The translations under genes were made by a program, and so were the position numbers. A stretch of 64,000 nucleotides of DNA from positions 483,662,001 to 483,726,000 of the forward strand of contig NC_067398.1 of NCBI RefSeq assembly GCF_016432865.1. Direction: 5' to 3'. The notes under the pieces were generated by a model, which did no database searches, was not told the origin of the DNA, and saw only the letters and a list, made by a program, of their open reading frames with translations. This DNA comes from Antechinus flavipes (Eukaryota). Positions 7,175-54,500 of the stretch are shown here, piece by piece (the first letter of the stretch is position 1; each line of letters opens with the position of its first letter).

Positions 7175-7328
7175 AGCTGATTCAATTTATGAGGAAATGA
7201 AACAGAGATATGGAACTCAGGGTTGCTATTTGCTTAAAATTAATTCTCGAACATCAAATCGATCATCAGATGAACAGATACCAGATCCTTGGAGTCAGTA
7301 TCTTCAGAAAAATAGTATTCAAAACCAG
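7175..7328 (+). CDS. TRAPPC8: TRAPPC8 window exon 3 (154 nt, phase 2-0)
   Basis: (R)ADSIYEEMKQRYGTQGCYLLKINSRTSNRSSDEQIPDPWSQYLQKNSIQNQ; tttcag / gtatat. Confidence 0.95.
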
Positions 7329-8470
7329 GTATATGTAAAAATAAGCAAATAAAGTTCAAACACAAATTCTCCAAATCTTTATGATGGCTTTTGAATGACT
7401 TTTTTTCTCCCATACTGTAGGACTGACTGTAACTATAATGGTACTACAGTTTTAGTTTTTGGAATCTCACTAATTAAACAGAGTCATGAGCAAACTAGCA
7501 TTAGAACAAGTAGTTTGAGTTTATTTTAACCATCATTGACAAATCCTTCCTTACATAGCTATGCTTTTTTCTAGATAAGAAAAATGAGTTAGCTGATCAA
7601 GTAATTGAAAAATTATTTGCACAATTGAATTTGTATTATCTTCTAGGAGTGTAGAAGATAGAATTTATATTTTATAAATTTATTCTATGTGAATGTCTGT
7701 AGCAAACTTGATTAGTCACTTATTCTTGATATTAGTAGTCTCTTTCTCTGACAAACTCATCCATCATCCTGACACCTTTTCTACCTTATGTTATTTAGAT
7801 GCATGGAATTTTCTTTCTGACTTATAACTTCTTTATTCCTTATAAGACCTTCTTCATTTTTGTTTCCTACTCTCTTCCTTGTACTCACTTAATAAAAGAG
7901 CCATTTTGGCAGGAAAACACTGAGGTGGAGCAAATTCTTCCCTAATTTGTAAGATTTACATTCCATATTAGAATTTACCGATTAATGTGTTGTTTTTGGT
8001 GTGTTAACTGTTTTGGTATGTTGACTGTAACTTCCCTAATAAGAAAAGCTTCTTTTAAGGAAGTAAAAGATATTTTGATATATTATATAGAATAAAATCA
8101 TTAATGGTTTGGGTAGTGTTTTGCTTTTTTAATATACTAAATATGACCTAAAAATCTCAATTGTAAAGAATTTGCATTTTATTTCCTCTGGGTTTCTAAG
8201 ATGACTGTTAATGATTAATCTATATATTTCTTTTTATGTACAAATTTATCCATACATAGTGACTTTTTACTTACATAGAAATCATCCCAGAGCTGATATT
8301 TCACTTAACTTAAGAAATTGTTCCAGCTCTTGATTGCTAATGTTTCTTACATGGTGCTAAACGTTTGCAAAGACAATGCAATAAGAAATTAACCAGTTGG
8401 ATGCGAGAGAATTTAAAACTTAAGAAAAAAAATCAACTAAATAGTTCCCTTCAAGGCTACATTTATATAG

Positions 8471-8512
8471 GAATGCCCAGAGACTTTGAAAGTATTTGAG
8501 GTGGGACAGAAG
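8471..8512 (+). other. Candidate 42-nt in-frame cassette exon (ECPETLKVFEVGQK)
   Basis: tatag acceptor, AAG|GTAAGC donor, 14 sense codons, in a phase-0 intron. Confidence 0.5.
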
Positions 8513-9049
8513 GTAAGCTGGCCAGAGTGGAGAATTATGGCCGATAGTACTCTAGTAAGGATTAGCTAATATTCACACAAGCATATAGAATGCTGATGTA
8601 CATCTTATGTGAAATGCCCAGATGTATTTAATTCTCAAAATAGATACCACTATAATCTTTTAAAATACATCCATCTTAATCAAACACATATTGTTCAGTT
8701 TTCTGAGATACACTTTACTATGCCTAATTAGCTGTTTGACTGTTCTTTTTCTCCAACATCCTACTCTTTTATAGACAATGTGAATAAGTATCTTTAAATT
8801 TAAGGAATGCATGTATATTCAATGAATAAATATACTGATGAAATGAATTACATTTGAAACAATTAGCATAGCTGAATGGCAATGTAAATAGGTAAGTAGA
8901 TGAAGTTAATGGTTAGGAAATAAATATTGTTCTTTTAGAAAGTATACTTGTCAGATAGAATCAGCAAAGTAATCCTATTGTGATATTAGGTTTGGTGATT
9001 TTGTATTATTACCCAAGTATAGTTTCTAATCCATTTTTTCTTTTAATAG

Positions 9050-9143
9050 GAATCATATGAAGATGGTCCTTACACTATAGCTTCAAATAAAAATGCTGAT
9101 AATAGCATGCTTTCGTTGGATGGATTAGATAATGAAGTCAAAG
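9050..9143 (+). CDS. TRAPPC8: TRAPPC8 window exon 4 (94 nt, phase 0-1)
   Basis: ESYEDGPYTIASNKNADNSMLSLDGLDNEVK; taatag / gtcttt (weak donor). Confidence 0.9.
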
Positions 9144-9777
9144 GTCTTTATTTTTTTAATTAAAAAAATTTTTTTTGCCAGTTTTTCATTATGAAAAAGT
9201 TTGTTAAATTGCTAAAAATAGATCAACTTTTATACCCAAAGATGATTCCATTTTGACATGTTAATTTTTATTCTGGAGACTTGAGTTAAATTGATTATAG
9301 TTGTTTCATGTAAAAAATAATTCTTTTAAAATAGTTATATAAATGAATTTTTTAATTCTTAAGAAAGTAGTAAGGGTATTAAGAGTAACTTTAAATGCAA
9401 CTTGATATTTTTAATAATTTAAGAATTTCACTATTATATATTTAATATGTTTTGTTAAGAAATTAATTGTAATAGCTTCTTTTATATTTGATTTTTGACC
9501 TTTTAAAAAATATTCTAATTTTTCCCAAAACATTTCAGTTTTCTTTAGATTTCTTAATTAAGATGAATTTTTTGAGTCATACTGTATGAAGTAAGAATTA
9601 ATTTTTAGTTTTGCTCACAAAGTTTGGGATTTTAGGGGCATAAATCTTGTTATCTAAATTTTACCCATTAAGGTTAAATGCAAGTATAAATTTGATAATT
9701 ACAGTTTTCTGTCTAATCAGTACAGTAATTTTGTATTACATAATGTTAACAAAAGAAAACCTCCATTTTTTAAATAG

Positions 9778-10034
9778 ATGGTTTACCAAATAACTTCAAA
9801 GCTCACCCACTTCAATTGGACCAATCCAGTGACCCTGCCAGCAACTTTGATGGAACTGATCACATAAAATCTGCTGTGTCATTACATGAAACAAAAAAAA
9901 TGAACACAGGAATACTTCATGGTGCATGTTTAACCCTCACTGATCATGATCGAATTAGACAGTTCATACAAGAATTCACATTTCGAGGTCTTTTGCCACA
10001 TGTAGAGAAAACAATTCGGCAACTAAATGATCAG
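9778..10034 (+). CDS. TRAPPC8: TRAPPC8 window exon 5 (257 nt, phase 1-0)
   Basis: (D)GLPNNFKAHPLQLDQSSD...HGACLTLTDHDRIRQFIQEFTFRGLLPHVEKTIRQLNDQ; overlaps ORF 9816-10049. Confidence 0.95.
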
Positions 10035-19274: not shown

Positions 19275-19741
19275 TTTTTTTTTTAAATTTTTATTTAATA
19301 ATTACTTTATATTGACAGAATCCATGCCAGGGTAATTTTTTTACAACATTATCCCTTGCACTCATTTCTGTTCCGATTTTTCCCCTCCCTCCCTCCACCC
19401 CCTCCCCTAGATGGCAAGCAGTCCTATATATGTTGGATATGTTGCAGTATATCCTAGATACAATATATGTTTGCAGAACCGAACAGTTCTCTTGTTACGC
19501 AGGGAGAATTGGATTCAGAAGGTATAAATAACCCGGGAAGAAAAACAAAAATGCAGATAGTTCACATTCGTTTCCCAGTGTTCTTTCTTTGGGTGTAGCT
19601 GCTTCTGTCCGTCATTTATCAATTGAAACTCAGTTAGGTCTCTTTGTCAAAGAAATCCACTTCCATCAAAATATGTCCTCATACAATATCGTTGTCGAAG
19701 TGTATAATGATCTCCTGGTTCTGCTCATTTCACTTAGCATC
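19275..19741 (-). mobile_element. Young L1 3' end with 19-bp TSD (1 mismatch)
   Basis: AAAAACTG(A/C)ATATATTCTT at 19256-19274 and 19742-19760; same 3'UTR as 24399-25449. Confidence 0.9.
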
Positions 19742-24328: not shown

Positions 24329-24398
24329 GTAAGTGATTTTGAACTTTCTTCTATACATTTTTAGATAAAGATTGCTTTCTATAAAGTTGCTGGATTTT

Positions 24399-25449
24399 CA
24401 AGCCATTCTCCAATTGATAAATGGTCAAAGGATATGAACAGACAATTTTCAGATGAAGAAATTGAAACTATTACCACTCACATGAAAGAGTGTTCCAAAT
24501 CACTATTGATCAGAGAAATGCAAATTAAGACAACTCTAAGATATCACTACACACCTGTCAGATTGGCTAAGATGACAGCAAAAAATAATGATGAATGTTG
24601 GAGGGGATGCGGGAAAACGGGGACACTGATGCATTGTTGGTGGAGTTGTGAACGAATCCAGCCATTCTGGAGAGCAATCTGGAATTATGCCCCAAAAGTT
24701 ATCAAACTGTGCATACCCTTTGATCCAGCAGTGTTTCTATTGGGCTTATACCCCAAAGAGATACTAAAAAAGGGAAAGGGACCTGTATGTGCCAAAATGT
24801 TTGTAGCAGCCCTGTTTGTAGTGGCTAGAAACTGGAAAATGAACGGATGCCCATCAATTGGAGAATGGCTGGGTAAATTGTGGTATATGAATGTTATGGA
24901 ATATTATTGCTCTGTAAGGAATGACCAGCAGGATGAATACAGAGAGGCTTGGAGAGACCTACATGTACTGATGCTAAGTGAGATGAGCAGAACCAGGAGA
25001 TCATTATACACTTCGACAACGATATTGTATGAGGATGTATTCTGATGGAAGTGGATTTCTCTGACAAAGAGACTTAACTGAGTTTCATTGGATAAATGAT
25101 GGACAGAAACAGCTACACCCAAAGAAGGAATACTGGGAAATGAATGTGAACTATTTGATTTTTGATTTTCTTCCTGAGTTATTTTTACCTTCTGAATCCA
25201 ATTCTCCCTGTACAGCGGGAGAACTGTTCGGTTCTGCAAATGTGTATTGTATCTAGGATATACTGCAACATAATTAACATATATAGGACTGCTTGCCATC
25301 TTGGGGGGGGGGGAGGGAGGGAGGGGAAAAAATGAAACATAAGTGATTTCAAGGGATAATGCTGTGTAAAAATTATCCTGGCATGGATTCTGTCAATACA
25401 AAGTTATTATTAAATAAAATTAAAAAAGAAAAAAAAAGAAGAAAAAAAA
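24399..25449 (+). mobile_element. Young 5'-truncated L1 (ORF2 C-terminus, 3'UTR, poly(A))
   Basis: Open frame 24401-25045 with CWRGCGKTGTLMHCWW motif; TSD ATAAAGTTGCTGGATTTT at 24381-24398 and 25450-25467. Confidence 0.95.
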
Positions 25450-53844: not shown

Positions 53845-54500
53845 TTTTTTTTTTTTAAATAACTTTTTATTGACAGAACCCAAGCCAGGGTAATTTTTTA
53901 CAGCATTATCCCTTGCACTCACTTCTGTTCCGATTTTTCCCTTCCCTCCACCCCATTCCCCAGATGGCAAGCAGTCCTTTACATGTTAAATAGGTTACAG
54001 TATATCCTAGATACAATATATGTGTGCAGAACCGAACAGTTTTCTTGTTGCACAGGGAGAATTGGATTCAGAAGGTATAAATAACCCGGGAAGAAAAACA
54101 AAAATGCAAGCAGTTTATATTCATTTCCCAGTGTTCTTTCTTTGGATGTAGCTGCTTCTGTCCATCCTTGATCAATTGAAACTGAATTAGCTCTCTTTAT
54201 TGAAAAGATCCACTTTCATCAGAATACATCCTCAAACAGTGTCGTTGTTGAGGTATATAATGATCTCCTGGTTCTGCTCATTTCACTTAGCATCAGTTCA
54301 TGTAAGTCTCTCCAGTCCTCTCTGTATTCATCCTGCTGGTCATTTCTTACAGAACAATAATATTCCATAACATTCATACACCACAATTTACCCAACCATT
54401 CTCCAATTGATGGGCATCCATTCATTTTCCAGCTTCTAGCCACTACAAACAGGGCTGTCACAAACATTTTAGCACATACAGGTCCCTTTCCCTTTTTTAG
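53845..54500 (-). mobile_element. Young 5'-truncated L1 with 17-bp TSD
   Basis: TAACAATCAATTTTCTT at 53828-53844 and 54501-54517; open ORF2 tail (ORF 54219-54506). Confidence 0.95.

Follow-up and report, generated by a model that had tools for sequence, protein, structure and literature searches.

A Candidate In-Frame Exon in a Marsupial TRAPPC8 Intron Is Probably a Lineage-Variable Cryptic Exon

Introduction

Is a 42-nt open segment, set between an AG and a strong donor inside an intron of TRAPPC8, a regulated exon of this gene or a stretch that merely looks like one? TRAPPC8 is the TRAPPIII-specific subunit and is used in ER-Golgi traffic and autophagy; partner binding might in principle change if its linker carried an optional insert. 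An earlier note on this DNA had proposed a hidden tissue-specific cassette exon, the inclusion of which would add the 14 residues ECPETLKVFEVGQK to a linker of the protein. The sequence features on which that proposal was built (a weak AG, 14 sense codons, a strong donor and a ctaaat motif about 30 nt upstream) are all present. Insertion between SIQNQ and ESYEDGP would also be in frame as the note had it, since the host intron is in phase 0 and the segment has 42 nt and no stop. In this study, the segment was placed in the context of its host gene, of the splice sites of the window (the whole 64,000-nt stretch of DNA that was analysed), of TRAPPC8 proteins from other vertebrates and of an exon annotated at the same junction in the tammar wallaby.

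The Host Gene and the Insertion Site

The host gene is TRAPPC8 (Trs85). Two exons of the window match the Pfam family PF12739 (E values 1e-9 and 1.6e-13), the exon at 55927-56394 matches PF24544, the TRAPPC8 Ig-like domain (E 7.6e-56), and local tblastn placed 18-19 exons of the window collinear with vertebrate TRAPPC8, corresponding to about residues 145-1141 of the devil protein. These matches and the collinear exons bear out the gene assignment of the earlier note. In a protein comparison, the TRAPPC8 encoded here was nearest to those of the devil, antechinus and dunnart, with a few residue differences from each, which suggests a dasyurid-like marsupial, probably a further dasyuromorph. Gene length is 120-137 kb in the wallaby, the sugar glider, the wombat and the devil.

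The intron that holds the candidate and the two coding exons that flank it are given in Table 1. No second copy of this intron was found within the 64-kb window, and no Rfam family matched it. With respect to the PF12739 profile, exon 3 stops at position 245 and exon 5 restarts at 240, so that exon 4 and the beginning of exon 5 are extra to the profile. Because the residues that follow the insertion point have no counterpart in the family profile, the insertion site can be regarded as a variable linker, and the placement of the insert in a linker, as previously suggested, therefore holds.

Table 1. Features of the candidate segment, its host intron and the flanking exons. Positions are those of the window and a slash marks an exon boundary.
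Feature	Positions	Strand	Details
Upstream TRAPPC8 coding exon	7175..7328	+	Ends ..PDPWSQYLQKNSIQNQ (..SIQNQ); donor AACCAG/GTATAT at 7329; Pfam PF12739, E 1e-9, and tblastn
Phase-0 intron holding the candidate	7329..9049	+	1721 nt
Putative branch point, ctaaat	8437..8442	+	About 30 nt 5′ of AG 8469-8470; from the sequence only
Rival upstream AG	8454..8455	+	ttcccttcaAG/G; score -3.29; 15 nt 5′ of AG 8469-8470
Stretch homologous to the wallaby 66-nt cassette exon	8455..8512	+	58 nt; from end motifs and an anchored alignment
57-nt exon variant via AG 8454-8455	8456..8512	+	In frame; TAG at 8468-8470, a premature stop
Acceptor AG of the 42-nt segment	8469..8470	+	tatatAG/G; poor pyrimidine tract; score -3.46
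Candidate open segment	8471..8512	+	42 nt; 14 codons without a stop; translation ECPETLKVFEVGQK
Strong donor, AAG/GTAAGC	8513..8518	+	Context CAGAAG/GTAAGC; GT at 8513-8514; score 7.3
Downstream TRAPPC8 coding exon	9050..9143	+	ESYEDGPYTIASNKNADNSMLSLDGLDNEVK; starts ttttaatag/GAATCATATGAAGATGG (ESYEDGP..)

The Candidate Segment and the Strength of Its Splice Sites

The AG and GT flanks of the 42-nt segment, its length and its frame are compatible with the flanking exons, as would be needed for a cassette exon. The segment is one of two forms that the same donor could close. Between the two weak AGs, only that at 8469-8470 yields an open exon, of 42 nt. The AG at 8454-8455 is the one preceded by the sole real pyrimidine run (ttcccttc), and translation of the resulting 57-nt variant in frame f1 reads ..ATFI, a stop and then ECPETLKVFEVGQK. 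A donor at 8501 is a second option and would yield a 30-nt form.

Splice-site scores were taken from a crude position-weight matrix and are meant for ranking only. Ranked in this way, the donor at 8513 falls in the top quartile of the 16 real TRAPPC8 donors (mean 3.45, range -3.5 to 8.7) and is comparable to the best ones. The AG at 8469-8470 belongs to the best 20% of all AGs, yet lies at the low end of the 16 real acceptors (mean 1.7, range -4.4 to 10.8); both competing AGs are near the floor of that range. In this AT-rich gene, the scores of real acceptors reach down to -4.4, so that a weak acceptor does not in itself disqualify the candidate.

How often such an object arises by chance was estimated in two ways. 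The whole window holds nine GT sites on the plus strand and two on the minus strand that score at least 7.3, and Markov simulations gave 5.6 ± 2.5 GT sites per 64 kb at the donor's score. Over 52 kb of TRAPPC8 introns, five frame-preserving open segments between an AG and a GT were found at three loci with a donor of at least 5 and an acceptor of at least -3.5; the candidate at 8471-8512 alone among these five has a donor of at least 7, and the same segment search on the antisense strand returned none. The candidate is thus the best pseudo-exon of the window, though about one object of this kind in every few 64-kb windows would be expected from chance alone. Pseudo-exons in general have been reported to be about tenfold more numerous than real exons (PMC1935003).

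Search for the Insert in Vertebrate TRAPPC8 Proteins

The protein set was extended from one exon to full-length TRAPPC8, then by junction-limited word searches and then by one marsupial cluster. It spans coelacanth and sturgeon to mammals, with many X-numbered isoforms among its members. In about 190 vertebrate TRAPPC8 proteins, PDPWSQ and HPLQLD, which frame the junction, lie 54-59 residues apart, with a single exception of 78 residues. The exception is isoform X1 of the tammar wallaby (XP_072460580.1), which equals isoform X2 plus the 22 residues DYICIGRMPGTSKKLGWEGGQK, and this insert sits exactly between ..SIQNQ and ELYEDGP.., the junction at which the candidate would be spliced in.

None of seven dasyurid isoforms (devil X1, X2 and T3; antechinus X2 and X3; dunnart X2 and X3) carries an insert, with NQ/ESYEDGP running unbroken, and none was present in 13 isoforms of six other marsupials. 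The 42-nt exon is absent from the gene models of close relatives among those listed, which for the marsupial cluster means 15 of its 32 members, the remaining 17 presumably including antechinus X1 and dunnart X1. No 5-residue word of ECPETLKVFEVGQK, the peptide proposed in the earlier note, was found in 269 proteins, of which about 140 are full-length TRAPPC8. A literature search returned no published TRAPPC8 exon at the SIQNQ/ESYEDGP junction.

Nucleotide data were searched as well. The open frame of exon 3, used as the query of a word search, matched genomic fragments of placentals, sauropsids and fishes and none of marsupials. Among metagenome contigs, a degenerate pattern yielded 13 matches, about the number expected by chance, none of which resembled the intron. 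In the 24 RNA runs listed, some 0.2 of the sampled words were present, close to the fraction that the exons make up, a figure that carries no junction information.

Comparison With the Tammar Wallaby Exon

Conservation of splice sites and frame was assessed against the wallaby exon alone, as inferred from its protein. When the wallaby insert was compared with the whole window by a protein-to-DNA scan that tolerates frameshifts, glycine- and glutamate-rich chance matches dominated, and motifs from the two ends of the insert were searched for instead. The first of these, YI.IG.?MP from the 5′ half, has one occurrence in the two strands of the window together, at 8458 (YIYIGMP), and none in 150 simulated 64-kb sequences. 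The second, E.GQK from the 3′ end, has a single plus-strand occurrence, at 8498-8512, directly 5′ of the strong donor. When the back-translated wallaby exon was anchored on the donor GT, its start fell at 8455 and the alignment comprised 60 columns. At least 8 mismatches were forced, and gaps took up 8 columns.

The two ends of the wallaby insert do not share a frame in the window. The frame of 8455 fits the 5′ half and that of 8471 the 3′ half, and the wallaby frame, when read here, runs into a TGA at 8497-8499. A net 8 nt of indels breaks the frame between the wallaby exon and the window. The wallaby acceptor maps to 8453-8454, which is AA here, with the AG at 8454-8455 one base downstream. 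Judged from the aligned sequences, then, the stretch is orthologous and its donor is common to the wallaby and to this genome, and its coding content is not conserved. Homology spread over two frames, the indels and the AA at the acceptor position argue that there is no coding constraint on the stretch, and a divergence of 8 gap columns and at least 8 mismatches is like that of an unconstrained intron and incompatible with a conserved coding exon. Conservation of the open frame, which the earlier note had named as a check, was not what the wallaby exon showed: relative to it, the donor is kept, the acceptor is not and the frame is broken.

The wallaby X1 exon and the candidate are therefore alike in the junction that they occupy, in the homologous intronic stretch at 8455-8512 and in the donor (..GQK/GT). 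They differ in length, with 66 nt in the wallaby as against 58, 57 or 42 nt here, and in their peptides: the 5′ half of the wallaby insert lies in another frame than ECPETLKVFEVGQK, and just the last few residues are common to both.

Discussion

The reading that we favor, with a probability of roughly 0.6, is that the segment belongs to a lineage-variable cryptic exon in the TRAPPC8 intron, one that is annotated as included in the wallaby, is silent or spliced at noise level here and encodes no selected peptide. This reading draws on the chance rate of such segments and the abundance of pseudo-exons in general, on the strong donor and the weak acceptors available here, on wallaby X1 as the sole insert among about 190 proteins, on the unbroken junction of the seven dasyurid isoforms and on the discordant frames of the two species. 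Against it, the donor matches the best ones of the gene and its homologue is apparently used in the wallaby, and real acceptors go down to -4.4, so that a weak AG may be tolerable. The models also cover 15 of the 32 members of the marsupial cluster, and the splice matrix is a crude one.

A plausible course of events can be outlined. In it, a near-consensus U1-binding donor (AAG/GTAAGC, 8513) sits in an intron that otherwise drifts freely. In the wallaby, the same stretch would carry a good CAG/G acceptor; at 66 nt its length preserves the frame, and the annotation there lists it as a cassette exon. In the present genome, the position of that acceptor reads AA, and small indels would have shortened the stretch to 58 nt, which would leave the spliceosome with the two weak AGs at 8454-8455 and 8469-8470. 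Use of the former would give the 57-nt exon with its in-frame TAG, likely a target of nonsense-mediated decay, and use of the latter would give the open 42-nt exon of the earlier note. A mixture of the forms would be expected, provided that the donor supports exon definition here at all. The likeliest state here is probably skipping, with inclusion of both forms at noise level at most, and the 14-residue peptide would then have no selected function. RNA evidence behind the wallaby model is inferred, as is low use of the exon here.

The proposal of the earlier note, a genuine regulated cassette exon that adds ECPETLKVFEVGQK to the disordered linker in some tissue, is in our judgment unlikely. 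It is consistent with an AG, an open frame and a strong donor inside a phase-0 intron, with the rank of the segment as the best frame-preserving pseudo-exon over 52 kb of introns, with an insertion site in a linker missing from the Pfam profile and with the homologous donor, which terminates an annotated cassette exon in the wallaby. However, neither the peptide nor the frame is common to the wallaby exon, the weak acceptor has a rival 15 nt upstream, an AG with the better pyrimidine run that yields a stop, none of the seven dasyurid isoforms listed carries the insert, and 5-residue words of the peptide are absent from the 269 proteins. A broader version would make the segment part of a marsupial-wide alternative linker exon in which the donor is kept and the acceptor, length and peptide change from one order to the next, with a 66-nt form in macropods and a 42-nt form in dasyurids. 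We regard this version as rather improbable; if true, it would describe a fast-evolving, tissue-specifically included linker insert in a core autophagy and trafficking factor.

The competition between the AGs could also be read the other way round, with the donor at 8513 used together with the AG at 8454-8455, or with both AGs, so that the product would mainly be the 57-nt insert with its stop codon and part of the TRAPPC8 mRNA would go to nonsense-mediated decay. That AG follows the only real pyrimidine run and is the first at a workable distance from ctaaat, and the resulting exon does hold an in-frame TAG at 8468-8470. On the other hand, its -3 position is an A (AAG), which is disfavored for acceptors. 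Poison exons subject to nonsense-mediated decay are usually highly conserved, whereas the stretch shows many indels relative to the wallaby and no sign of the strong conservation that regulated poison exons typically display. We consider a poison exon at this site quite improbable. Least credible to us, and highly improbable, is pure coincidence, in which no species could splice the stretch as an exon and the wallaby insert arose as an artefact of annotation. The chance expectation of about one such object per few windows and the presence of the insert in one species model only speak for coincidence, but the wallaby insert fits the exact spot at both ends, through motifs found at no other place in 128 kb of sequence with both strands counted. 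In RefSeq models, moreover, clean cassette differences between isoforms, such as that between wallaby X1 and X2, normally come from transcript alignments.

The lineage-variable cryptic exon that we prefer can be set beside two known classes. Like the intronic pseudo-exons of ATM, CFTR and HPRT, the candidate is intronic and exon-sized and has AG and GT flanks and a good donor; pseudo-exons are absent from the normal mRNA models of their species, and the candidate is absent from the dasyurid models listed. Unlike the pseudo-exons, it has an orthologous stretch that the annotation of one other species includes, and it falls in a grey zone, with the pseudo-exon on one side and the newly born exon on the other. 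With neural and muscle micro-exons it shares its shortness, its preserved frame and its location in a linker. Micro-exons, however, typically show conservation of sequence, frame and flanking intron across vertebrates and have a usual limit of 27-30 nt, whereas the candidate has 42 nt and is not conserved even between two marsupial orders. The kind of phenomenon is an ordinary one, and what is new is that the orthologue of the candidate is an annotated wallaby cassette exon. The evidence points to a stray strong donor around which an exon formed in the wallaby lineage and decayed, or was never completed, in the other, a small case of exon birth and death among marsupials. Some caution is needed on the wallaby side as well, as its isoform X1 may itself be a low-level cryptic product.

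Other Observations on the Locus

The same intron contains a further near-consensus donor, TAG/GTAAGT at 8892, with a score of 6.1; upstream of it, no frame-preserving open segment with an acceptable AG was found. At the junction of exons 4 and 5 (9140-9146 and 9775-9780), TRAPPC8 isoforms across species vary by one residue, with NEVK/DGLP next to NEVKVDGLP, NEVKADGLP and NEVKAVDGLP. This variation looks like a choice between alternative splice sites that lie close together. The inferred donor of exon 4, AAG/GTCTTT at 9144, has a very low score of -3.5.

The main difference between isoforms X1 and X2 of marsupial TRAPPC8 is a 28-residue cassette (DRSIKASVPWYNNWKDTLMELKESTLYS in the devil, residues 118-145 of its X1), and the same difference is seen in a caecilian, with 1469 vs 1441 residues. 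Its position is just ahead of the first exon detected in the window, upstream of 3248, and no exact match to the devil cassette was found in the window.

The TRAPPC8 introns also carry interspersed repeats, at 24365-25042, 19316-19528 and 53863-54081 on the plus strand and at 25188-25403 on the minus strand. One intronic repeat is a 226-codon open frame that resembles a fragment of a LINE reverse transcriptase, and another element, present in at least three copies, has in common ..PRWQAVLYML..LQYILDTIYVCRTEQFS..GRIGFRRYK.
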